A DNA stretch of 64,000 bases from Bugula neritina (taxonomy: Eukaryota > Animalia > Bryozoa): contig OZ037766.1 in the NCBI GenBank assembly GCA_964035545.1, positions 5,694,722 to 5,758,721 of the forward strand. The letters run 5' to 3'. This document shows, in pieces, positions 1 through 59,427 of this stretch. The position numbers and the translations under genes are program-made. Numbering within the stretch: the first letter of the stretch is position 1; every line of letters starts with the position of its first letter. Below the pieces are notes generated by a model that saw only the letters and a list, made by a program, of their open reading frames with translations, did not search any database and was not told the DNA's origin.

Positions 1-122
1 GGGTGTAACATGCTTTAGTGAGAATATATATATAACTAATGCTGCTTCTACTACATTTTTCACTTTAAAACATACTTGTGAAGGCCTCCCCACATGTCAC
101 TGCCTGTTATAATCTATGACAG

Positions 123-279
123 GATTTGCCAGTGTCACGGTTCCCATATACATAGCTGAGACTTCTCCCTCCGCCATACGAGGCCGGCTAGTGTCACTCA
201 ATCAGGCCTTTATTTCTGGAGGAATGTTTGTGTCACTTGTAGCCTGTGGCACCTTGTGTCCAGTGGCCTTCGGTTGGCG
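123..279 (+). CDS. SLC2A13: Alternative exon A (TM4-TM5) of SLC2A13 paralog 1
   Basis: cag|...|gtgagt, 157 nt, phase 1 to 2, open: [53 protein letters not shown]. Confidence 0.88.
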
Positions 280-3200
280 GTGAGTGAGTCTCAAGAATGC
301 GGGCAAAAGTTGGATGAAAATTCAAACTTGTTTTCTGCTTACATAAGAAATGTACAAATTTTTGCAAGCGATCAAAACTCAACTTGACTACTTATTAGAA
401 TTACAAATTTGAGTTTTCACCAGTTTTACGGTTGTTAGCCGACTTCACTAACAGTTTATTTAACCTATTTAGTTGTGGTTCCCGGAATCTTCTCCCCTCT
501 TTAATCCAATGACTACAAGTTTCATTGAGTAAAAAAGCTGTCTATATCTCTGTAGTTTTGTTCCTGTAGGGTTTGCATCCTGCGTAATTCCGATATACAT
601 TAGTGAATGCAGCTCTGCACATGTCAGGGGTAAACTGGTGACCTTCTTTAACATGAGTATAACTATTGGCCAGTTCATATCTAGTGTCACAGATGGATTG
701 TTCTGTTATATTGCAGATGGATGGAGGTAATATTTATTGCTAAAAGAATACCTCACAACTTTTTGCTGATGCGTCATTTGAGTGAAACTATTATAATAAC
801 ATGCACGCTATAAGATTGCAATGGTTATTCTGTTTCTAAATTTATTCTCCTGGGATGAAGTGAACTGACACTGAATTCTAATATGTTGAAACTCTCCATA
901 AAATGAATTTATTAAAAGCAATGTTATTGGCTTCTCTTGTACTCTCTAATCTCATTCGCAGATACATGTTGGGGCTAGCTGCTGTTCCTGCTATCATACA
1001 GCTGATTGGTTTCTTGTTTATGCCTGAAAGTCCCAGATATCTGGTGAAGAAAGGCAAAGACCAGCTGGCTATTAATGTAAGTTTTGCTGTCCCTGTTTAT
1101 CGTAACTTTAAGGCTACTTGTTAGCAGTGTAGTTTAGTTCTTCATAAAGCAATCTACAGTGTATTATATATTCCTTATTGCTGGCTGCCGAAATTTATAG
1201 AACACAAATATTTGTTTTTGATTTTTTTTTAAAATTAGAACTTCTAAGAATATTAATCAAGTGCCAAATAAATACATCATTTCATTGTAAATTAATACGA
1301 AACATTTTGATAGCATTTTATTCTAATTTCAGCTCTCATAAAGAGTATGTTTTACCAAATTTGCTGATTCACAGATTTTGCGTCGACTAAGAGGTGTGAC
1401 AGATGTTAATGAGGAGTATCAGGCTATAAAGACAGCCTGTGAGGATGAGGTCAAGGCCAACCAGCTCACTTCTGATAGGTCAATAGTTGTCAGAGTGTTT
1501 ACTGATGCTGCAGTGAGACGTGCTCTTATTATTGGAGCTGCACTACAACTCTTCCAGCAGATCACTGGCATCAACACTATTATGTACGCATGCTTGTAGT
1601 GTATCGGTTTTAATACTCAGTTATCTTATATCAGCTCATTTTAAACATCCAGGTTCTAAAAGTTTTGGTTTTCCTTTGTTGTTAAGCTATTCCATTATTA
1701 GCTCAATGAAATCTAAACTGTGTCTTGCAGATTTCCAGAGAAAGTTTATATTAAATAAATAAGAAATAATACTTCATCTTCAAATGTTAATTTCTGAATT
1801 CTGTAAATTGTAGGTATTACAGTGCTACTATAATACGAATGTCCGGAGTAACTAATAACTGTACAGCCATCTGGTATGCATCTATCACTGCCTTCTTCAA
1901 CTTTATCTTCACGTTTGTTGGTATTGCCCTGGTGGACAGAGTTGGCAGGAGGAAACTCTTTCTAGCTAGTTTGGCCGGTTTGTTATTGTTACTTCCTGTG
2001 AAGTTTAGTTATTGTCTAGCAAAGTTCTTTTTAGTTTCATATAAATACTCTAGAAAACATGTAATTTTTACTTTATGACAATATTATACAGGTTTTCTGC
2101 CCTTTCCACTTGTGATATTTTAGAATGCCTGCGAAACTTTCTGTACAATCAGACATGCCATATCTTGTCAAGTTTTCTCTTACTTTATTTTCCAACATGT
2201 CTTAAAACACAACTGTTCTTTTATGTCCACAAGGACAGCATCAGTGAATATGCCTTGTTCTAAAAACTTTCATCAACAGGTTAAATAAATATCTTTGAAA
2301 CTTATTAAAAGAAAACCTTCAACTGCGCAATCAATTTGTGTGTTTATCTATGTAGGTGTGATCTTTAGTCTCCTTTTCATGGGCATATCTTTTCAACTTG
2401 AAGAGAAAACAGCCCCTGATGTAACACAAGCGTATACTGTTGTACCTGATGAATGCGCTACCAAGTTCTCGTAAGTAACCACTTACCATTAACAAACAGT
2501 AAGTCACCACTCAGCTTTATTGGTTAAACATACTTGCCCGTAGCTCACTGAGGTATGCATTTCCATGACTAGCTGTTTAGGTTATATAGAACTTATCGCA
2601 GCATTAAATGTTTTCACTGTTGTTGCAGTATTAATTGCTCTGAAAATGCATTTGGCTGATGTTATTTATCTTTAAACTTGAGACCAGCTCAATTAGTGCA
2701 GATCATGGCCCTGTCAAACTGGTGTATAGTTTAGCTTCATTTTTTCCGCACCCCAATATATATGAGGCATTCTATTGAAGATGGGTTAGCTAGAAAGTCA
2801 AATAGAAGAATATATATTCTTCAGTACACAAATAAATTTTAATCTGAGTGAAACTCTAGCATCATGCAGAGTTGAAAAAGTTGGTACTTCAACACTAGTT
2901 ATGTTACAGAACATGTGGAGAGTGTACTAAAGATCCAGACTGTGGGTTTTGTTTCACCAAATCGGATGATGGTGAATATGTGAACTCAACTTGTCTGTCT
3001 GCCAGTAAAGACTTGACTTCCTCTCTCTATGGAGCATGCTCAGTGAACAGTAGTAGTCAGTCTATCTCTACTACATATACTCTAGCATATGACTACTGCC
3101 CATCTCCTTATGCATGGATGGCAGTGATGGGAATGGTCACATATCTTATGTCTTTTGCGCCAGGTATGGATTTATAACACTAGGTTATAATTGTATTTAT

Positions 3201-4029
3201 TATATGAAATTATTGTGTAGAATTTTGCAACATGCCACAATCTATGCATCAAGTTTTATTTTTCCTTTTATATTTTTATTTTGGAAAAATGTGGTTATGT
3301 GATTAAATATTCAGAATAATATGTTTATTGTTACTGTTTACTAATACATATTCCAATGTGATTAGAATATTTGTATAGCTCACGTTTATATACAGGCATG
3401 GGTCCGATGCCATGGACTATAAACTCAGAGATCTACCCTCTTTGGGCCAGAAGTTTCTGCAACTCTATAACTACTTTTGTTAACTGGACTTTCAATTTGC
3501 TCATCTCTATAACATTCCTCTCATTATCAGAAGCTATAACTAGACAAGGTATTGTTTTTTTAGTGTTTATAGTTTGTTCGATGCCTAAAATTGTAAGCAG
3601 TATGTTAGTTTTGACCCCCCCCCCCTTCATAGATATTTTTTGGTGGTCTGAGATTTTTCTATCAATGCACAACTGGTTCTCCATGTCATAAATGCTTGTA
3701 CTAATTTCTTGATGATGCAAATCTATGACAGAATTGCTTCACAAAATAATTTTGCAATTTGAAAATTTTAAATTTCAATAATGATTGCTTTTGACATTTG
3801 GTCTTTACTCATATTGTGTTTTATTTTTACAATTCAACGCTTAAGTTACTCTTTATTGTTTGAACTTGTAGGTGCATTTTATCTCTACACATCCTTTGGG
3901 GTCATTGGATTTATCTTCTTCTTCCTTGTTCTGCCTGAAACTCGAGGCAGAACTCTGGAAGAAATGGAGGTTTTATTTTCTGGAAGCTGGTTTGTCAGAT
4001 CTAAATCCCGTAAACAACTTATGGACTGA
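123..4029 (+). CDS. SLC2A13: Proton myo-inositol cotransporter (HMIT/GLUT13)-like MFS sugar porter, paralog 1; 5' exons lie outside the window
   Basis: GT-AG exons: [123-279 OR 570-726], 962-1076, 1375-1583, 1814-1977, 2356-2470, 2910-3163, 3396-3548, 3872-4029 (TGA); phases join. Motifs [27 protein letters not shown] Cys-rich loop ([14 protein letters not shown]...YDYCPS), [29 protein letters not shown]. Confidence 0.93.
570..726 (+). CDS. SLC2A13: Alternative exon B (TM4-TM5) of SLC2A13 paralog 1
   Basis: tag|...|gtaata, 157 nt, phase 1 to 2, open: [53 protein letters not shown]. Confidence 0.9.
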
Positions 4030-5134
4030 GACTCGGTCTTGCTTGTGCAATGCACTAATCAAAGCCTTGGTTTTAGGATTTTTCAAGGGGCAAAGATGGT
4101 GTGCCATAATTATCTTTATATTTATTAGCTTTAACAGCAAAAATCTCCTGTTTTCTATGCACTCATATATTATTTTGATTGCAAAATTCAAAAAAAGTTT
4201 ATCAAGTCGAGCTTATAGTCAAATTTTTAGAGCCTAAATGTTCTATTTGAATCTACCTGTTGGATTTTAGCTTGTCTATTGTCCCTACTCGTTATATATA
4301 TTAGATTATAAGGTTATTTATATATGCCTTTGCTCATTTTTTATATTTTTATTAAAATAGCCATATTTTTCATAAAAATAATGCTGATGGTAGGCAATGC
4401 ATTCTGAATCAAATTAAATGGCGGCGATGTATAGAAGTTTTGGTAGTAAAGGTAAATATTAACATATGCCCTGTTGTTATCCTAAGAGTTGAGGGTTGAT
4501 GTTTATATTCAAGAGTGAATAGAGAAAAATAAATCAATTGAACATGGAATTTCACATTGAATGTTAATTTATTTAAAATCAAATAATTTAACAATGTAAG
4601 TTACTACACAAATATTGCAGCTTAGCAGCTTTAAATAATAAGTAATAAAATATATGCATTACTAACTTAATTAATTAACTATTCTATGGTCTTTATCAAT
4701 TTAATAAGCTACTATTGTGATTGATGCATAGTGTAGATCTAATGTCATGTTCAATAAATAATACTAGTATAATATTTATGAGAATGGAATAGTAGAGTAA
4801 TTCTGCTGGTACACCATTATTACTAGTTAACTCCAGGTACCTGGCAGCTCATTAAATATTATTCTATTGGGACGCATTGCATGCTAATGTCAACCTCCCA
4901 CAAAGTTGCAGAATATCACTACATTTCCATGATTCTTGTGTGAATGGATTTTCTATTCACCTATTAGAAACAGCTACATCGAAGGAAACAGCAACCATAA
5001 ATAAGTTAATGCAAACCGCAACCACAAATTAATCCGTAAGGGCATCCATTCGCAGTCATGGAAACGCAGTGTATGCTTTGGCACTATTAGCACAAGTCCG
5101 AAATTCAATATAGACAGCTGACCCACAATTACGG

Positions 5135-8100
5135 CTATTCGTTGCTAGTAGTTTCATCATCTGAGTCTCCATCATCTGTAGTCGTACTGATTTGTCTGTT
5201 AGTGCATAGTTTAGTAACGACAACATCTTTACCACTCTCATTCAACTTGTCTCTACACAGTATGTTGGGTCTTGGTTTTCTGCTAAATATGCCATAGGTT
5301 GAGTCTGTTTGCTGTTCTTCAGATGTGGAGGAATTAACCAGAGTCGAGCTGTCTTGATGACCCATGTGTGTGTAGTTAAATTGAGAGGCCTTTTTAGTGA
5401 ATGGATGAAATTTACCACCTGGATCCAGCCAGGGCTTAGCAAATATTCCTTCTATTTCTTCTAGGTTTTTACCTTTTGTTTCTGGCAGAGTCAAGCAAAG
5501 GAATACTAGACCTACTACAGAGAAACCCAGGTACATCCAAAATGTTCCTAAAAATAAAAAACAGATGGTTCTTTTCATGCCAAATACCTATATGTCTAAA
5601 TTTTTTATTTGTCTTTGCTGCTATTATATCTACTTTCGAAGAAAATACATAAATTTACTTGTATTGTTTTCAGAGAGGAAAATGATTAAATATCGTTCAC
5701 TACAAGGCTGGGGTTGCATGTAGAAAAAATGCAACGTACATATGAAGCACTTCGAATGGCATAAAATGTTGAATTGTCAATTATTGCTCAAATTCTGAAA
5801 TAATAACGAAGCCAGTAAAGGACACTATATTTAACCATACTATAATCGAGTGCATTTATAAGGTCTTGCATACCATGTGCTCCTATAGCTTCAGTCAGTG
5901 AAAGGAAAGAGATACTAATGCACAGGTTAAATAGCCAATTGAAAAACGTGGCTGCACCATTTCCAGCACCACGAGCCCACAGTGGGTATATCTCTGCATT
6001 TATTGTCCACGGCATTGGTCCCATACCTACATCCAAAATCTAGCAAGTTTTTATTATGGTAATAATAGAAGTTTTTCATGTTGCAAATTCTGAAAAAAAA
6101 ACTTTTATACAGGAGAATTAGTCAACTAGCATAATACTTAACATCTGTAGGCTAACATTGAAATTTACCAAAATATATGGTGAATGTTTTAGCACTGCCT
6201 AATCTTGACATTACCATACTAACCTGGGGCAAAGAAGACCAGGTACATTACAAGACCAACCATTGGCAGCCAATAAAGTTCAGTTGGGCAGAAATCGTAA
6301 GCCCAAACTAGGTTGTGAGTAGAATTATGTTGCAAGTTGTAATTATTACATCGTCCTTCTGTAGAATGCAACCAATCATCTGGTGATGTCACAAGACAAG
6401 ACCCATTTACTACAGAACTTGAGCTGAGCTCTTCGTAGCAGTAACCACATCCAATGTCCATTCTACATTCGCCACAAGTCCTATAATATTTGGAGTATTA
6501 TAAATTACATTATCATAATACATCACATAGGTCTTTGAAACACAGTGCTATTAACTTGGAAAAAACAAGGTTTTACCATAATTTACTTCACAGTATTGAA
6601 ATACTTGGCTATTATTTATTTTGTCACAGCATATATTAGACATAGATATTCACTGCAGTCCTTAATAATGAGTGCTGCATACATGATACACTGCTTTATC
6701 AATCTAGCAGCACAATTGATAGAAATAGATATATGACTTTGATTATTCAAAGAGAGCAATTTTTGAGGAACTATTTCTATGTTTATCACATCACTGAGAG
6801 CAATAGTAATAGTATAAAACACAATCAATGCAAAGCACTTTCATGTTATGATATTGTTTTATAAAGAGCATAACTTTTTTCATAAATTTTATACAGAAAT
6901 ATACTTGAAATAAAAACAAACATTTACTATTATATTGCATTAGTTCACCTAGCTAATAAGAATGGTAAATTAGCTTATAAGATGCCCTTAAATTACTTAG
7001 TATGGGGGGGAGCTCTCTTGACCTCACCTGTAGGAAGAGCAGTTTGAGTTTGGGAACTCAGTGTAATCTACAGGCGGAGAGTGGATAACTTCCATTTGAA
7101 ACCCAATTCCCAGTACTGCGAGGCTACAGATTGCACCTAAACAATAGCAGGTTGAAAATAGTACGTCAAAACGGCACCTTTTTTCGAAGTACTGCAATAC
7201 ACCTCCAACTGCTCAACTTCTGAGGCAGCTGATAGCTAATTTAAGAAAAAAATCTAGAATTACCTTTTAAAAAATATAAATTTTGTTTTTAAAATTTGAT
7301 ATTCAAAAATTTGTTACAAACAAGAAAATATTATAACTTTAAAAAAAAATAGTACACAAGACATTCTTAAACAGAAAACCTTTCAACTAGTAGGAAATTG
7401 TGTTTACCTACAATACTTGAATATAGATTGTGCACCACTGAAGCTGAATAATTAATAATGTTAAAGGCTACTAAAAGCTTAGGTTGTTGCATGGAGAATT
7501 GATTAACAGGAACGTATGTCATAATATAATAGAGCTTGAGTCGGGGAAAAGTGGACTTTACTGGACTTCATGCTATTTACTTCAACTCATGTTTCAAATT
7601 GATATTATCAAAAGTAGATAGTCTAGTGTATCTTCCACTTTCTTCAAGTCTATTGATTATTTATATATAAACATGCGCTTATGCTTCTGCCCACATATAA
7701 TAACTTTGAGCAGCAAGAGCTAATGGATTCAGCATTATTAAAAACATTCAGAAAATCTTTAAAAAAGACAACTCCCAGTTTCTTGTTATCACTGCAATAT
7801 TCTCTATATCATAGACTCTATGATATTATAGAGTTATGCAGCTTCATGTTCACGATTAAAACTTGTAAATATTCTGCATTTTATGTTTCTTCAGTGTATA
7901 GTAGAAGATCGGTCAACAAAATCAAATCTTACCAACTAAACTTATCAGTGTTAATGGTCGTCTTCCCATTTTCTCTACTAAGTAGAGCCCAGCAAGGGTA
8001 AACAGGAAGTTAACGGAACTAGTTAAAGCTGATAACCATATAGCTGTTTTGGTGCTTCGGATTCCCGCCATTGTAATAATACTTGCACTATAATACCTGA

Positions 8101-11100
8101 AATTGTAATAGCATAGTTATCCAGTGTAATATGTTGGTGATAACAGTGTTGTATGTAACTACAGATCTACTATAGCATAATTACATTGTAAAGTATAGAG
8201 TATATACTGACTAATAATTTCCGAGGCTACAAGATATTTATTTGTTTAATCTGTCTTATTCTGTTATCAGAAGAATTATCCTGGTAATGAAATTAAACAG
8301 TTTTAGCAAGAGTTGAACAACTTAGAAATATATTATATGAAATGTAAAAGGTAATAACATTTTTTAAACAAATAAAAGTAAATCGCTAAGGAATTTATGA
8401 AGTTTGTTGCTGGCTGGCACCAAATTATGTTATAAAATTAGCTTAGAAACTTTTTTTAGAATAAATATTCATGCGATTTAAGGTATGACTGTGTTTAAAT
8501 ATCATAAAACAATCAATAAATTCAATTAATTTAAGTCTACTTTGTACTAAAAGTGCCCTACTCACCCAGTGTGAGAATCAATACCAATACTATTGCTAAA
8601 ATCACACTAAAGCTAATTATTAAATATTACGTTTGTAAGGCAACTGACTTACATGACAGTGTTAATGCCAGCAAGCTGCTGTATAATCTGCAACCCACAG
8701 CCAACCACCAGTGCTCTAAGGACTGAAGGGGTTTGTAACATTTGCAGGAACAGTGGGCGGCCCTCTAAAATGATATATGTAGCAAATACACTATTTCTGT
8801 CACACAGCCTATGTGCGAATGCATAACACTTCCAAAGTTCATACATTTATGCTGATTTAGTCTGAACACATTGACTTTGCCAGTGCTGGGATCATAATGA
8901 GTAAATTCTTACTACACAACTGTCACAAAAATAGTATAACTTTTGTGACAAAAGTGCACACAATGCATGGACATACAGGTTATAGTAACTAACACCAAAA
9001 AATTTTAAGCATAGCCAGTCTGTGAATGGCTAATTCATACGCCATTCTAAGATGGTTTTTCACTTCAAAAATGAAGTTTTTCTTTTTTGCAGTAACAAGT
9101 TTGACTGCAAATTTGTGCGACTTGATTTGTAAATTTGCTACTAAAACAACTCAACAACTCACTAAGACATCCTATAAATACAGTAACACGGCAGAGGCAG
9201 CAGGAGCGACAAATTGACACTAATGTGGAAGATATTCGATGCACAACTCACAAAAATCAATCAAATTGACAATTGCATTCTAATGAGTGAATAATCATAT
9301 GGGTAGGCCTCCTGAACCACTCAGAAATTCAATTCATGGCCCGAGTTTCAATAAAAAACTCTCAAGGCTTGTCCGTTGTTTGCTAAAGAGACATTCTTGT
9401 AGCAGGGGCTTTCTTAAAAGCCCTCAGTAAGAAATATTTGCATTTTAATTTCAGTCAATAAATTGTAATGAATATACAACGAAGTTTTTGTTCAATGGCT
9501 ACTCTTAGGAGAAAATTTAAACTCTAGAAAGAAGGGGCAGATGAGCAAACTTAAGTTGAAATAATTAATGAATAACAGGTAGCAAGGAGACATTCAAATA
9601 ACAGGCTAAACTCTGAAAAGTTGATAAACAATTATATAGTAACGTAATGATGGTAATGTAATTATTTTGTATCCATGTAATGATGCAGAGTAATAGTGTT
9701 GTTTATGATTCATTCATAGTAATGGTATTGTTATGGTTTATTTATAGTAATGTAAGGATATAGATTAATATTGCAGTAATGTAAACAGAGTAAGGCTGTA
9801 GTAACGTAATGATACAGAATAATAATACTGTAGTAATATACTAATATATAAATATGAATGTAACCGCACCTCCTCTGTGTTTCATATCTTCAGCCACAGA
9901 GAGTATACTAGATCTAATAATCTCATATTCATCTTCTATAGACACAGATGAGCCTCTTAGCTTTAGTAGCACAGCTTTGGCTTCTTCATGGCGGTTTCTT
10001 ATTATGAGCCAACGGGGACTTTCAGGCATGAAGAGAAAAGCAGCGAATTGCAGAACTGAGGCTATAGATCCCAGGCCCAACATGTATCTGCAACACATTA
10101 GCAACTCCATTTATGTTTATTTTGCCAAGTTTAAGATAATTAAACGAAAAACCAAATGGAATGTACTTCCAATTATGTACTGCTATCACGCAGATAGTAA
10201 GTATGTTTTTGTGTGTATTTCACAAATTGAATCCAAGTGTTTTATTGGGCACTATTTCTATATCATTATGTAGAAAGCCATTGAAATGTGCAGAAGGCCA
10301 CCAAGAATTGCCTTTTACCATTGAAACATACCTAAATCTAGGAACAGCCTAGTGGGAAATAGAATGCTGAAGGCTACAAGCAATGTTGTCGGCAAAGAAC
10401 TTTCAAAGTAGAGTTTTAGCCAAATCTTCTTAATATACTTATTGTGTAATTCTGTTTTATGTCTTACTTTTAAAATCAATATTGTAATTGCATCAAACTA
10501 TTAGCAGTGGCTACAGTTAATTCAGAGTGGGCAGAGTTTTGTACAGTATATACCAGCGTTGCATTACTCACTGAACTCAATTATAAGTAGCTGGGCAGGC
10601 TGCAATTCAGACTCTAATCCAACAAGAACTATTAGCTTGGACATCACATGAATTTAATGTTATGTGAACTTTCATAACCATCTAGTTGATAGTCACCCTT
10701 TATATATTAAAAGCTTCTTGTGAAAAAAGGATAGCTTATACTTCATATAAATGACTTAAATAGTTACGAAGATGGCTTAAAATAAAAACTTATAACTCTC
10801 AATTTAAATGGTAGATAATAGTAAAAGAGTATAAAAAGAATAACCAGAAGATTTTTCTATGTCCAAATGAATTAATCGATTTAAATAAATAAGATGCTCA
10901 TCCTTGAACTTACTTGGGCTTACAGCAGACGCATTATATAGCTACAAGCAAAGTTTTACGAACTAAAATCCATAAAACCAAATGCCAAATTTAAATGATA
11001 TTATAAGTGTTTGCTCCATTTATTATTTATGCACATGTATATATACATAAATATCAAATTATATAAAAAGAAAAGCTTGAATGCGATATCAAAATTATGT

Positions 11101-13548
11101 ACAAAGCACTTCAAGTATAATAGAAAACTATTGCGTGGACAGATGTATGTTTTGCAACTCGGTATTTGCAGGTAGTTTATGCCATGAGTTGATATAGCAC
11201 TAGATTAAAATCTATAAAATGATGTCTATATAAATGTATGCATAATTTATAAGTGTCTTTCAGGTATAAGACTACCTCATAAACTATCACTTATGACGAT
11301 ATGAAGTAATATTCAATGCCTGGTGAAGTATTGTGAAGTGCTACAAGAAGCAATGTGCATCATGGTCTTACCTCCAGCCGTAGCTGTTGAAGCTAAAAGC
11401 ACCTGCCACGCAGTTGGCAATGAACTGGCCTGCTGCCAACATGACTATATTCACTGAAACAAGTCTGCCTCGTATGGGTGCGGGTGCTGACTCGGCTATG
11501 TACATGGGTGTAGTTGTAGAAGACAAACCTGACAACCAAATAAGGTACTTGTCAACATAATATTATATGTAGCAGTTGTCCTCCCTGCAGGGTTCATTCA
11601 CCGAATAGAAAATATTATTCTGCTACTTCTAATTCTGTTGTAGACATTTAATTATATATGTTAAAGAACTTAAACAGAATCACACAAAGGAGCAATTAGC
11701 AGTGTTTCAACTTTAACAGTATTAATTTTAAGCATTATGTTATTAACTTCAATGCAGCCTTGAAGCTTTTACTTGAAAGCTTACAATTAATGGAGACAGA
11801 TATTGGAATATTATACGGTTGCTTTCATCTGCTACTACTAATTGTGAGCCATTAAAATACTGCCAACAAGGCAAATATAGAGCAACAAATTGCACTAGTC
11901 CATTCAGAATGTGAAGATGTTATATACTTATATGGTGGTAGATAAACTGGTAACAGCATATAGCTGCAGTGTAAGTTTACGTGTTTGGAAACTAACTGTT
12001 CATCAGAGCGCTGCACTAGCAACTATTGCTTACTGACTTAAAAAAATTTCAACAAAGCCTAGCATGAAAAGAAAAATTAAAAATACATTAATTGGAACCA
12101 AGTTTGAAATAGTTAGTTGTTATACTTTCTTGCACACATAAAAGTTCTCCAAATATTATTTTGATCAGTACTATGTATCCTGTACATTAACCTATCTCAA
12201 TATAATTTATATAAACATAAAAAGTTACTAATTTTATACTAAACTTGATGGTTCAAGAAAAAACCGGTAAATTTTGTCAACTAGATAATTATATTTCATA
12301 TTGGTTCTGGTCGTAGAATTCCTATCACATTTTAGAGATGTTACTTTCAAAGTCTGCTAACTGCACTACGTGACCTTTCCAACATAGGGAAAGGAAAAGG
12401 CAAAGGGAAACTTCCCTTTGCTCAAAGCAGCCAAAATTGTGTCAAATGCACTATTTTTGCAAACATTACATGTAAACAGATGTTAACAGAAGAAAACTTT
12501 ACCTATTCCAGTTCCAACTATAATTCGTCCAATCACAAGCATGTATTTATCATCAGCAAATGCCATGCACAGTGACCCTGACGTAAAGAAAACACTAGCC
12601 AATAAAATGACGGGCTTTCTTCCAACTTTATCATTCAAGTAACCACCAACTAGAGCAAAAACAGCTGCAGACCCAATGGTAGAGGCTACGACAAACTCTT
12701 GCCAAGCAGTGTTTAATTTAAAGTCCTAAAATAAAGAAATACATTAGCAAAGTACATTAGAATAAAGTACATACATTTAAGAGATCAAGTATTAGTAATA
12801 CTGGTGTTTTGTATTCTGAGTGATATATACTAGCTAGGCACCAGTACATACTTATACTGGAGTACACTATCAGGACCTTGGAAATACATTCTACTATATG
12901 GATTATACTATTTTTTCTATTGGTGTTCTACAAGCGGGTTGTGACAACTGGAGGCAGCAAAGAAAAAAGCTTAAACTAAATCAGATGCTTTTCATTTAGA
13001 GCTTCAATTTATTGTCTCATAAATTTTCATATCAGAACTTAATGACTGATTTGAATCATATTATCAAGCTTAATTTCAAAACTAAAAAAGTAATTTGTCC
13101 AATATGCTGTCTATCTTTACTGTAGGTAAAACCATCATTTCTTTGCCGTATCTCACTCTAACAATGGTCACCATGTTAAAAAAATTTAGTACATCCATGA
13201 AAACTGGCAATTTAGCTTCACATACTAAATCCAATAATATTTAACCACCATAACGTATTATAATTGAAACCTTTCAAGAAAAATTCACAACATAATAAAT
13301 TTATTCTCAACAATTTAGATTCCAGTAAATTATAAGTTCTATAAAATATTAATATAGAAGTAATAGTAATGTAGCCTTACCTCCCGAATGAGTAAAATAG
13401 CACCTGATATAATTCCTGTGTCATACCCAAACAAGAAACCACCTATTGCCGCAAGGGCAGTAAATGCATAGAGAAAATATGGCGTCTTTTCTTTGCCATA
13501 CTGTGCACCTTCATTTAGCTGCAAAGAGCTCCAGTCTTGACTTATCAT
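5135..13548 (-). CDS. SLC2A13: Proton myo-inositol cotransporter (HMIT)-like, paralog 2, complete
   Basis: Exons (minus): 13548-13381, 12725-12503, 11528-11372, 10087-9870, 8764-8653, 8096-7933, 7136-7028, 6480-6224, 6026-5874, 5547-5135 (TAG). Motifs [28 protein letters not shown], Cys-rich loop, [29 protein letters not shown]; long S/T/D-rich C-tail. Start codon less certain. Confidence 0.93.
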
Positions 13549-15276
13549 TTTCTCTAACTGCAGAGTATCCAAAACTCTTACTACAGTTAGTTATTACTCA
13601 AAAGTTTACTTTGAAAACTACAACATTTCCCAGTAACTTATCTATCAGTTACTAATTACTTGAACAAATACGCGATACATGATGTTCCACATATTTACAG
13701 AGAAGTAGAGAAAGTACTAATGAGTCATAGCCAATGAATGCACTTTCCAATGAACACATTCAGTAGCATGAGCAGATGCAAATGAAATGCAATCGTACAA
13801 CTAGTATATATAATGATAGTAGCAATGTGAAAATCAATAACTATATATATATAACTGAGTCTTATTCATTCAAAATGATTTGCTTTGTAATTACTACAGA
13901 CTGACACTGTAGTCTTAAATGGGCTTCAATCCAATATCAATATTTTGCATATCTTTGATGACACATAAAATAAACAATGCATTATTGGAGTGAGACAACT
14001 AACAAGGGTATAAAGTACTTTAACACATACCTTTCCAATTATCAAGTAGGTAAACTAGACAAATGTGGACATATTGCACAACTGCAAGTAGGAAATCCGC
14101 ACAGTCTTTCATCAATGACACAGCAGGAGAAAAGTAACACCACATTGCACAATAGTAAGCAATGATAAAATGCCAAATAACTGTGTCTATTGCATATTTA
14201 TTATTAAAAAATATAGCTCATTGCAAATACAAGAATTTATAAAATTAAATTATAATTCAAAGTACATCATACTTGAGTGCATAAGCCATGAGCTGGTGTC
14301 TACGCATAGAAAAGAGTGTATCAATTATGTAAGGCCTTAGATAATTGGTTAGTATTCAAATGGTCAGAATACAGAAGCAGCAAATGACTAATAAGGAAGC
14401 TGATTAGAACTGCATAATAAATTGTTAACTTTAAATATTTATAAAAATCACATTATTATATTATTTAATATCAAAGAGCAACTTGACTACTTCAGTGACT
14501 ATAGTGACTAGCTAAATTAGCACTATATAAGTACAATATAAATATCACACATTATTAATCCTCAGTGTTAGTAAAAACTATAATAAGGAAGAAAACTCCT
14601 CTACAAGATTTATATACAAGACTGGAGGTGGATAAATGTAATTAACACTACTAACAGCAGTAAAAACTTATTCCATTGATAGGAAGGCCAAAAGAATACC
14701 TGGCAAGAGTTCTAGGTCAGTTGTTAGCACCATTACATTGCACTAGCCTACTCTGATGAACCTAAAAATCACAGGCTATCAATAACAATACATAACACAG
14801 CTGAAACAGTAGAACACAGTCTAATATCTCACTCTACAATATTCTATAACTAGAGGGGAGCAAGACTTCCACCCCAATACTTCTAAAAGGAACACGGGCA
14901 ATATATTACAGCCAGCCAGTTGACCATTGTAACAACAAATATTTAAAAAAATCCTATTGACATGGAATGCTTTATAAATAAACAAGAGTTGTCTTATTTT
15001 TTAATAACTAGTATCATTATAAATTTTTATAATAGCAAGATGAAAATTATCTGATTGAGAAAAAAATTGAGTGGAAATAAAAATTTAACAAAAAATTGAC
15101 TTCAATTAACCAAAAAGTGTATCCAGGTACATGACTGTGGCCAATGAGCATGTGCCAAGTTAGAGAAAGGCAGCACCCACTGTGTCTGAAAGGGACAACT
15201 TCCCAGCCGCATAGAATGTATATGGATTGTTAGTAAGCAGAAGCATTGCCAGTAGAACCAGCCTAATGTATAGGGG

Positions 15277-18200
15277 TTAGTCAGCAATAGTACCATATGT
15301 CGTATGTTGACCTGAGGGTGGTCCAAGGGCTATGGGCACATTAGGGTCGGCTTCTATCAACTGGTCAGTAGATGGAGAAGGTTCCACCTCGATAGGCTCC
15401 GTGAGTACGGGAGGGGCATCACTGTCCTCGTCCTGAAAATTAATTAGATTCACAATTGACATTTAACATTTAGAGATTAATAAGGTGAGTGAGTTTATAA
15501 AGATTTGTTGAGGCATTAAAATATTTTTTTTAAATTAACTGATGATTTTAATATTAACAATAAACACGCATAATATACCATTGAAAGGTTGAAATATTAA
15601 AAACCATCTCAAAAATATAGAATTTATACATCTATTCCAGACTTGCTTCCTAAAGCAAAAGTGGCTTTGAGTTTTCACACAAATGTTTCATTGAAGACAC
15701 TGGCTTTTTGATAAATTTTCTAGACACATGTACCGGTTCTATAGACATACATGTACAGTTCAATAGACATACATGTACAGTTCTATAGACATGCATGTAC
15801 AGTTCTATAGACATACATGTACAGTTCTATAGACATGCATGTACAGTTCTATAGACATATGTGTACAGTTCTGTAGACATACATGTATAGTTATATAAAT
15901 ATACATGTACAGTTCAATAGACATACATACCGGCATAGCCGAATAGTCATCGTCAGGTGTGGGGCCACATTTCCCACAGCAGCAGTTGCAGCAGAAGCAG
16001 AAACAGAAACAGCAGCAGCACCCAGAGAATATGAAAGCGAAACAGCATAGCACCTAAAACAAACAAACATACATTTTAGTTGATATCACTCAGTAGAAAC
16101 TATTCTACGGTACTTTGGAGTACCGGAGAGAAAAGAGATACACAAGCATAAACTAGTATGTGTAAACTGCTCTAGCATATACAATCAAATTTACTTCAAG
16201 TGAATGATTTAAGTGTTCCTTTGTAAACAACTGCATTCAAAATAGGCTAGTAATCTGTTAGAGCTATAGTGTATGCTTCCTCCATACATGCTGTACAATA
16301 TTGAAAAAACTGAGGACAAATTTACAGGTAAATGTTCTTCAAACAGGAAAAGTAATATTCACCTTAGCCCAGGGTTTCTGCAGGCACAAGTATGAGCTGA
16401 ATCTCTCTTCACCTATCTGGCTGGCTAGATTTAGTCCCATGGAGCCATAAGCATCGTATATTTTCTTTTTAGTTGGATCTGTTAAAACTGCATTGGCCTG
16501 GTTGATCTGCTTAAAAAGTTCTGTGGCTTCTTCATTGCCTTGATTTTTGTCAGGGTGACAGGACAATGCTTTCTACAGTAACATGAAAATATTCCAACAA
16601 AAACATTAAATGATAAGATAACTCTACTCAAAGTGTTGAATAAGTTATAAACTACTCATGTTTTCTGCTTTCTATAGCCATATGATCACATGGCACGCAG
16701 TTTTGACAGTTTAAGAGACCAAATTTTTTTTTACTCTGTTGCTGTTTTCGAAGTTAAGACATAATTCTACTACAGAAAATAAAGTAATGCCCAACACCTG
16801 AAACTGTGTATAATAGTGTAACTTCTACTTGAGCAAAGCTGTGTTCACTCAACAGCTGTTAGTATCACAGATAATGAGTGATAAAATGTCACAGGTAAAT
16901 GCATTCATAATAGGTATTTCATCAACACTGATTGTCTGTAATAACATTACGTCTATATACTGCAGCGTCCCACGGCTGATAAACGTTTTACTTATCATTT
17001 AAGTTAAGATAGACTTGAATTTTTTTTGTGAGTAAAAACCAATTGACACTTTTCATATTGAGTCAATCAAACAATGTTTAAACAGAAGTATTTAAAAGCA
17101 ATACACACAATTAATGCATGCAAGTTTCTATTTATTAAATTAATCCACTTGACTACAAGCTTTAAAACATTCAACCATAGCACCACCAAATTAGGCTACA
17201 ACTGCTCTTCCAACATTCAAACCAACACAACCCCTCCTTCCCCCCCCCCCCCCCCCCCGCACCTGTATTAAACAGAAACTGGAGATGCTATGAAATTCCC
17301 TCTACCTAGACTGCCTCACTAACTATATCTTCTAGGACCAGCTTTCATCTTTGAGATAGACTATAAACACAACTGTACACAACTGCCAAATCTGTCCAGT
17401 CATGGTAAGGTACTAAAATTGACTATCAAATTGTACGCCAGATCACAAAACATAAATCAACCCTCAACCTGAGTTCAAAACAGCACAAAATGTTTCATCC
17501 TTTACCTGTTACTAAACAACATAAATAAGCTTGTTACTAAAATTATCCATTCCGATAAACATCTTCTTGACAGTCATCTAATTTTTTAGATTTAATCAAA
17601 TTTTATTACTTTGTTATTATTTTATTAATTATTTATATTAAATATTTAATCACGTTTTCTATCATCTCACTCGATATATTCCAGGGGTGGGCAACTTTTT
17701 CTGCATGAGTACCAAATTCAGAGATCAGCCAAAACGAAGGGCTACATGATTGTATGCATATTACATTTTATTATAATGAAGTGATTTGTCACCAAAAAAT
17801 TATGCCGTGCTGATCAGAGTCCATATTGCCCACCCCTGCTTTATTCTGACATTTGAAAGCACTCTACATTTACCTGATAAGTTTGATCTTTGATCATTCT
17901 AAATGTCTAATGTTTGAAACTGACTAGTAGTACCATGTAGCAGTGAAATGTTTTACAAATCTGTCTAGTTTACAAATATTTTAGTATGGATAACATATAC
18001 ATTGCCTTAACACTACTATGACCAACTACTGAGGGGATATAATGCCTGCCAGCCTATGAAATCAAATACACAACAACTAAACACCTACCTAGCATTTAGT
18101 AAATGCTTAGTTTACATACTCAAAAATAAGCATTTTAGTAATTCATGGAAACAAGAAGCAACTGAAAGGCAGCTTTGCTAGAAAGCAGTAGTAGTAGTAG

Positions 18201-18335
18201 CAGTAGCAGTAGTAGTAGTAGCAGTAGTAGTAGTAGCAGCAGTAGTAGCAGTAGTAGTAGTAGTAGTAGTAGCAGTAGCAGTAGTAATACTAGTAGTAGT
18301 AGTAGCAGTAGTAGTAGTAGTAGCAGTAGTAATAC

Positions 18336-18377
<42 letters not shown>

Positions 18378-18546
18378 CAGCAGTAGTAGCAGTAGTAGTA
18401 GTAGTAGTAGCAGTAGTAATACTAGTAGTAGTAGTAGTAGTAATACTAGCAGTAGTAATACTAGTAGTAGTAGTAGTAGTAATACTAGTAGTAGTAGCAG
18501 CAGTAGCAGCAGTAGTAGTAGTAATAGTAGTAGCAGTAGTAATAGC

Positions 18547-18580
<34 letters not shown>

Positions 18581-19357
18581 GCAGTAGTAGTAGCAGTAGT
18601 AGCAGTAGCAGCACTAGTAGTAGTAGCAGTAGCAGCACTAGTAGTAGTAGTAGTAGTAGTACTAGTAGCAGTACTAGTAGCAGCAGTAGTAGTAGTAGCA
18701 GTAGTAGTAGCAGTAGTAGTAGTAGTACTAGTAGCAGTACTAGTAGCAGTAGGCTACACTTGAAGCAACATACTACCTACTATGTGCACACATAAGGCAC
18801 CTTTAAACTGGTTTTACACAGTGCTAGCCTCTTACCTTTCTATATGCTTTCTTGATTTCTTCTTGTGTTGCTGTTTTTGGTAAATTCAGTAAAATATATA
18901 AGCTGTCTCCTGAAGTCCTAAATCAAAACACAATTACACTTAATATCTGCAACGTAGCCACAATCTAACAGTTACAACATTAGGTCATGGGTTCGAATCT
19001 CAGCAATGCAAATTGTTGATGTTAGGAAAAGCATCAAATCATAGTTGTGTCACAGCATAGACCATCCTTAGTCTAAGGGTTCTCAAAGAGATGTGGACTT
19101 TAAACGAACAGTAAGTTTGCTATATACCATGTAATTTAAAACTAATAAGTGATTATTATACTAGATTAAAAATATTGCTCGAAAAATTTTCACTTTTCAA
19201 AATAAATGCTCTATCTTTTATTGGAACATCAGCAACATATTATTTCAACATAATGGTGTATATTTATTCCTAAAACTCACTATGCCAATACATCTTTACG
19301 ACTACAAGTTAATACTTACGATAACTTTCTGCCCGTTGGATGCTGTGAAGAGGCCAT
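15277..19357 (-). CDS. DNAJC5: DnaJ homolog subfamily C member 5 (cysteine string protein)
   Basis: Exons 19357-19320, 18917-18836, 16572-16363, 16053-15931, 15432-15277 (TAA). [21 protein letters not shown]-domain [14 protein letters not shown], cysteine string [19 protein letters not shown]. Exon acceptor at 19427; possible upstream non-coding exon with donor at ~24040. Confidence 0.95.
15721..15930. repeat. 22-bp minisatellite (CATGTACAGTTCTATAGACATA), about 9 units, in a DNAJC5 intron
   Basis: Tandem units read directly; abuts the exon donor at 15930. Confidence 0.9.
17682..17838. mobile_element. hAT-type MITE (157 bp)
   Basis: Perfect 13-bp TIRs CAGGGGTGGGCAA / TTGCCCACCCCTG; 8-bp flanks ATATATTC and CTTTATTC (6/8 identical), consistent with a decayed 8-bp TSD. 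Confidence 0.8.
18184..18750. repeat. (AGT/AGC)n trinucleotide microsatellite, intronic
   Basis: Direct reading; source of the spurious poly-Ser and poly-Leu ORFs. Confidence 0.97.
18950..19110 (+). mobile_element. tRNA-derived SINE, degenerate copy
   Basis: B-box GGTTCGAATCT followed by 'ttgttgatgttaggaaaagcatc' and a 3' 'ttctcaaagagatgtggactttaaac' shared with the copies at 40622 and 46122. Confidence 0.65.
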
Positions 19358-49927: not shown

Positions 49928-52752
<2,825 letters not shown>

Positions 52753-58630: not shown

Positions 58631-58713
<83 letters not shown>

Positions 58714-58761
58714 TGTGTGTGTGTGTGTGGGTGTGTGTGTGTGTGTGTGTGTGTGTTGTGT

Positions 58762-58852
<91 letters not shown>

Positions 58853-58865
58853 TGTGTGTGTGTGT
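58631..58865. repeat. Imperfect (GT)n microsatellite
   Basis: Direct reading. Confidence 0.96.
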
Positions 58866-59427
58866 TGTGTAATGTATGTTGTGCGTGGGCACATGGGTGT
58901 ACATGTGTGAGAAATATAGTTTAATAATTTACTTTTTTCACAACTATTTTTAGAATATGATCATGTAACTATATTTAGCATATTATAAAATGCTGAATCT
59001 GAATATAGCATTACAAAGTTCATAGCTAAAACGTTCCAAACTTCACACCAAAAATGTTAAGATAATTATTAAGATAATAGATTTATACAATACATCGTAA
59101 ACAACAAAACATATTTCAAACAACGGCTTTTTTATCAGATGATTCTGTTGGTTTATGTTTGGCTATTGTGTTTACCTAAAGGAGTATTGATTTAAAAAAG
59201 CATACAATTAAGCAAGCATATTCATTGAATGTATCATACCAATTATCAAGTAAGGCATATGACTCTGTGCTCATTCAGCTGCTATGTTGTGTAATTGAAC
59301 TAACATAATTTCTACTCCAGATTATGAAGTGAGCTGGTTACGGGACTGTTTAGCAGATTTATCAAAAAAAAAATAAAAGAGAGAAACTGCAAATCCTCAA
59401 TCAGAAGTTTTTCCAAACAGCTTAATT

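Follow-up and report, generated by a model that had tools for sequence, protein, structure and literature searches.

An HMIT-like transporter gene of the bryozoan Bugula neritina, hereafter W, carries a conserved pair of homologous tandem exons, A and B, that very probably undergo mutually exclusive splicing. Either exon encodes TM5 in full together with the end of TM4, so that the two isoforms would be identical except for ~52 residues, including two sugar-contact positions in TM5. As judged from the residues exchanged, these isoforms probably differ in substrate preference or affinity.

Gene W and its paired exons

The window analysed here (the whole stretch of 64,000 nt, corresponding to G000:C2:5694722-5758721 of a 216-Mb genome) and 40 kb of upstream DNA contain a cluster of three HMIT-like genes, namely U, W, which carries A and B, and P2 (Table 1). 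W was assigned to the sugar porter family (PF00083) based on a Pfam score above the curated cut-off and the presence, exon by exon, of the motifs GYDTG, GRK, E..RG, PESPR, QQxxGxN, and PETRG. Homology searches were run with single exons of W, one at a time, and the closest named relatives of these exons are “proton myo-inositol cotransporter” proteins. W further displays the Asp motif of TM1 (GYDTG) and a large Cys-rich loop of the HMIT type between TM9 and TM10. We thus regard W as a probable HMIT/SLC2A13-like proton-sugar transporter gene, with proton coupling and myo-inositol transport as putative activities of its product.

HMIT itself (SLC2A13, GLUT13; PF00083) resembles W in the position and phase of the exon in question (157-160 nt), in its Cys-rich outer loop, in the GYDTG motif of TM1, and in an N-terminal dileucine-like motif. 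In contrast to W with its two exons, however, a single exon occupies the A/B position in the fish HMIT gene (L018), in the invertebrate loci L037 and L038, and in P2, and the HMIT pocket is N/Q or T/Q where copy A of W has Q/M. W also belongs to a diverged paralog clade, the A/B gene forming its own group beside P2 and fish HMIT in the exon 6 tree (support 87/91; single-exon trees are weak).

Acidic dileucine motifs (DEIPLL and EEPPLL) were noted at the N-terminus, in the first coding exons of W (L009:8443-8550) and U, and suggest, as in class 3 GLUTs, an endosomal or lysosomal location of the putative products. Two cysteines also stand out, one at the outer end of TM5 (window 255-257 and 702-704) that is invariant in A and B, and one in the TM7-TM8 loop (about 1860, exon 6) that is invariant in the A/B gene clade. 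Among 24 outside relatives, none has the TM7-TM8 loop Cys and only two have a Cys near the TM5 site. TM5 and TM8 being neighbours in the fold, an outer disulfide between the protein halves, linking the TM5 Cys to the TM8 side, is possible. Elsewhere, the window includes long simple repeats, i.e. AGT x189 (18187-18752), a perfect GT x242 (50762-51245), and GT x121 (58631-58870), all of which are ordinary microsatellites.

The first-pass annotation of this DNA had proposed two homologous 157-nt exons of the same phase with open frames at positions 123-279 and 570-726, and the coordinates, splice sites, and frames all hold. Both exons run from phase 1 to phase 2 between AG and GT sites, A with acceptor ..GACAG and donor CG/GTGAGT, and B with acceptor ..CTGTAG and donor AG/GTAATA. 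Their products are 44% identical over the first 45 residues compared, and both match the Pfam Sugar_tr model from model position 119, above the curated cut-off. The predicted frameshift upon inclusion of both exons or neither was confirmed by early stops, since B, when spliced after A, is read in the wrong frame and terminates at its codon 11, and exon 4, when both are skipped, terminates at its codon 5. The single 157-nt exon expected on the minus strand in the neighbouring paralog P2 was also found. Additional copies upstream of base 1, which had been considered as well, did not materialize: 221 bases separate the end of exon 2 from the window, the gene has no third copy, and a search for a larger exon array in ~40 kb of upstream DNA and the gene itself left W with exactly two.

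Table 1. Position of the features of gene W, its two alternative exons, and the neighbouring paralogs. Positions are those of the window unless given with the prefix G000:C2.
Feature	Position	Strand	Description
First three W coding exons (0-2)	G000:C2:5693164-5694500		Upstream of window; gene W starts at C2:5693164
Alternative exon A	123-279	+	157 nt; end of TM4, loop, TM5; Q/M at XylE Gln168/Gln175 columns
A-B intron	280-569	+	290 nt; 63-733 nt in relatives; A>B splice none seen
Alternative exon B	570-726	+	157 nt; N/Q at XylE Gln168/Gln175 columns, HMIT-like
Common exon 4	962-1076	+	TM6; acceptor for both A and B
Common exon 5	1375-1583	+	Intracellular helices, TM7 with QQxxGxN motif
Common exon 6	1814-1977	+	TM7b-TM8; clade-specific Cys in outer loop
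Common exon 7	2356-2470	+	TM9
Common exon 8	2910-3163	+	Outer loop rich in Cys, as is typical of HMIT; start of TM10
Common exon 9	3396-3548	+	TM10-TM11
Last coding exon 10	3872-4029	+	TM12; stop 4027-4029
Paralog P2, HMIT-like	5136-13549	-	Single 157-nt exon (11528-11372), pocket residues I/Q
Tandem paralog U	G000:C2:5683.9-5690.2 kb		~4.5-10.8 kb upstream of window; L010/L009

Conservation across lineages is the strongest evidence that A and B form a functional pair. The order exon 2-A-B-exon 4 is intact, as far as contigs reach, in five other lineages (L017; L019-23/27/106; L024; L029/30; L107), in which A is always 157 nt and B 157 or 160 nt, and neither exon includes a stop or frameshift across the 6 lineages. 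Between W and four of these lineages, synonymous sites are saturated (pS 0.65-0.97) and non-synonymous divergence is low (pN 0.08-0.21 for A, 0.23-0.32 for B). Taken together, the intact pair, the saturated pS, and the low pN indicate that the duplication is older than these lineages and that both copies have been kept by selection, as the first-pass annotation had suspected from the open frames of the two diverged copies; neutral evolution of either exon is ruled out. In the tree, a branch supported at 99/97 separates A exons from B exons, and the B exons group together with moderate support (92/88). The TM4-TM5 exon would thus have been duplicated in an ancestor shared by six or more lineages, which are probably bryozoan.

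A contig from another sample shows A followed directly by exon 4 (L025:56-397), the same arrangement as in U, and begins just before A. This second A-only copy suggests that exon A was fixed repeatedly after gene duplication. A short contig carries a single diverged exon (L108:100-256, P0013) that falls within the A/B clade with S/A at the pocket columns and possibly represents a third pocket type. Weak and largely bacterial-looking matches (L039-L105) were left out of the comparison, and a word-based homologue search with exon B returned no match.

Splicing of exons A and B

RNA evidence was drawn from the assembled contigs of four runs, each from a different study, which were aligned to the complete gene (L012, whose positions are window positions + 4722). 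Because assembled contigs drop variants, they give no reliable levels and cannot prove absence. All constitutive introns of W were seen as GT..AG joints, indicating that these runs represent spliced RNA. The joints from exon 2 to B and from B to exon 4 (726>962) were present in all four runs, with a single contig spanning both in X3 and X5. The joint from exon 2 to A was likewise found in all four, in sequence that is common to U and W and is therefore ambiguous as to the gene of origin. W's own A joined to exon 4 (279>962) was detected in one of the four runs (X2), at a depth of 24 vs 22-23 for B and 43 for the W-specific exon 1. This joint was assigned to W because the alignment reaches the end of A, while U-type contigs break off 42 nt earlier (L012:4959), and because the one letter that fits either side of the joint agrees with the ..CG end of W and not with the ..AG end of U. 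No joint from A to B (279>570) was seen in the assembled contigs of the four runs. All three observations are in line with the junctions that the first-pass annotation had predicted, and the joints recovered show single inclusion of each exon, consistent with a model in which either A or B would be spliced in singly.

Coverage of A in X3 and X5 matches exactly the 117 nt spanned by U-type contigs and fits paralog-type A only, W's own A being either absent from these runs or dropped by the assembler. U-type exon A was expressed in at least three runs. Two further observations concern the same region. A junction skipping both exons, from exon 2 to exon 4 (L012:4501>5684), was found in X3 at a depth of 6, as high as that of B. 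Additionally, the intron after B (L012:5394-5683, window 672-961) is notably covered in X1 and X2 by contigs starting in the remnant of exon B in U, which reflects either a retained intron or cryptic use of this remnant.

Frameshifted products with both exons or neither would probably be removed by nonsense-mediated decay, the process by which most non-3n exon pairs of C. elegans are kept exclusive (PMC4165533). The donor sites also differ consistently: the six paired A exons have CG/GT(G/A)AGT, all B exons have AG/GTA followed by a weaker match, and the two A-only copies have AG/GT. This conserved asymmetry between A and B points to a regulated competition. For docking-site pairing of the Dscam type, simple tests yielded no conserved intron words, and the longest stems (8-15 nt) were at or near shuffled levels. 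An Rfam search of window positions 1-14000 returned no match.

Two other routes to exclusivity were discarded, namely U12/U2 incompatibility, since all donors are ordinary GT types, and steric exclusion in W, where the intron between A and B is 290 nt long and the best branch-like site lies 124 nt before the acceptor. In L107, the A-B intron is 63 nt long and pyrimidine-rich (L107:405-467), and steric exclusion is possible in this lineage, the only one with an intron short enough for it.

Pocket residues and competing readings

Exons A and B align without gaps to TM4-TM5 of XylE, GLUT1, and GLUT5, with exon position 27 corresponding to XylE Gln168, GLUT1 Gln161, and GLUT5 Gln166, and exon position 34 to XylE Gln175. 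Both of these XylE residues hydrogen-bond glucose (PMC10103171). At the two columns, every A exon has Q/M and every B exon N/Q, and P2 has I/Q; the alignment thus agrees with the earlier assignment of Q to A, N to B, and I to P2 at the GLUT1 Gln161 column. The second pocket position, at the XylE Gln175 column, had escaped the first-pass annotation, as had the upstream paralog U with its A alone. N/Q (71) and T/Q (35) are the prevailing pairs in ~150 relatives of B, followed by Q with I or L (19), and M at the Gln175 column is seen in A-type exons only. Glutamine combined with a hydrophobic residue is the GLUT1 pattern (Gln161/Ile168). Given that B matches the HMIT pattern and A combines Q with a hydrophobic residue, we infer that B keeps the HMIT pocket and that A is derived and hexose-transporter-like.

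In the model we propose, isoform B would retain the N/Q pattern of inositol transporters and lean to myo-inositol, and isoform A, with the hexose-transporter pattern, would lean to a monosaccharide. It is plausible, if still tentative, that exchange of TM5 alone acts as a splice switch, which sets the product as either an inositol transporter (B) or one for a hexose or pentose (A). We advance with comparable reserve the evolutionary side of this reading, namely that exon A may have re-evolved a GLUT-like pocket within an HMIT scaffold, with duplicates later fixing one setting; copies fixed on A alone after gene duplication would include paralog U and L025.

One residue need not switch substrates, as illustrated by GLUT5 Q166E, in which fructose binding decreased and glucose binding increased and improved glucose transport was not shown (PMC7462842). 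The absence of a clear switch in GLUT5 transport upon single changes at the pocket position would also suit a different, rather unlikely reading, namely that A and B are exclusive and functional exons whose isoforms share one substrate, with turnover, proton coupling, pH optimum, or trafficking as the only differences between them. Two elements that govern gating, the TM4-TM5 loop and the E..RG salt-bridge motif, are indeed also encoded by this exon, and in that region B shows invariant residues of its own (SC, EC). However, the fixed differences between A and B include both sugar-contact columns in every lineage, and the A pattern fits a different substrate class, so that a difference in substrate preference or affinity is the reading we favour.

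Paralog U bears on whether both exons are used in B. neritina itself. Exon A is intact in U and exon B is a frameshifted remnant, and stretches of 93-96% identity between the two genes lie next to introns that cannot be aligned, indicating gene conversion between U and W. Within exon A, the first 91 nt are identical in U and W, as expected from recent conversion, and several unusual changes fall within the last 15 codons of W's copy. Together with the U-type A seen alone in X3 and X5, this leaves an improbable scenario in which W really uses B only, its A being a rarely used leftover kept by conversion from U, and U supplies the A-type protein. Several features argue against it: the joint from W's A to exon 4 in X2 is as deep as B, the 3' part of A outside the converted tract (last 48 nt) is strongly diverged from U with many synonymous differences and no indel or stop, W's A keeps the CG/GTGAGT donor common to all paired A exons, and exon 6 of U, as assembled here, contains an in-frame TGA. 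Such a scenario would moreover have no bearing on the five other lineages, in which the pair is conserved.

Because of the tandem duplication and its conversion tracts, an assembly artefact, or an exon A that represents the end of some other, truncated gene copy, also had to be considered, and is extremely improbable. Exons 0-2, immediately upstream, belong to a single uninterrupted model and are spliced to both A and B, and the same exon order is found in independent assemblies of the five other lineages; the continuous gene model, the junctions, and the other lineages refute A as the end of a separate upstream gene copy. Neither of the two outcomes that the first-pass annotation had named as contrary to a functional pair, i.e. 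A deriving from a separate copy and neutral evolution of one exon, was therefore observed, and mutually exclusive use of two functional exons remains our preferred reading.

Tandem-exon substitution in sugar porters

Tandem-exon substitution is also used by other transporters, including SLC7A2/CAT-2, SLC25A3, SLC39A14, and SLC8A. A membrane segment is exchanged, as it would be by A and B, through exclusive homologous exons in SLC12A1/NKCC2 (PMC9741552) and mrp-1 (PMC4165533, PMC7434440), and these swaps tune affinity where tested. Unlike W, none of these six is a sugar porter. Exons 6a and 6e of coq-2 (PMC7434440) are comparable to A and B in being homologous tandem exons, spliced one or the other and conserved across invertebrate lineages, whose exchange changes substrate-site residues of a membrane protein. 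In that case, however, the protein is a prenyltransferase and the switch was shown by experiment, whereas W encodes a putative transporter and its switch is predicted. Within the sugar porters with solved structures, namely E. coli XylE, GLUT1, and GLUT5, specificity differs between genes and not, as proposed for W, between splice forms. A literature search of partial coverage, with human catalogue tables outside it, found no exclusive exon pair in SLC2A13 or other sugar porters, and the A/B pair is apparently the first tandem-exon substitution in this family.

Sugar porters would thereby join the transporter families using tandem-exon substitution, with two exons both retained long enough for synonymous saturation and with A-only copies that would represent a splice choice frozen by gene duplication. 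The choice between glucose, fructose, xylose, and inositol in sugar porters has so far been argued from single mutants and from very different proteins. Isoforms A and B, differing in ~52 residues that include two known sugar contacts, would instead offer a clean and cheap natural test pair. A switch between inositol and hexose, if true, would be without precedent among sugar porters and would provide a natural minimal pair for inositol vs glucose specificity.
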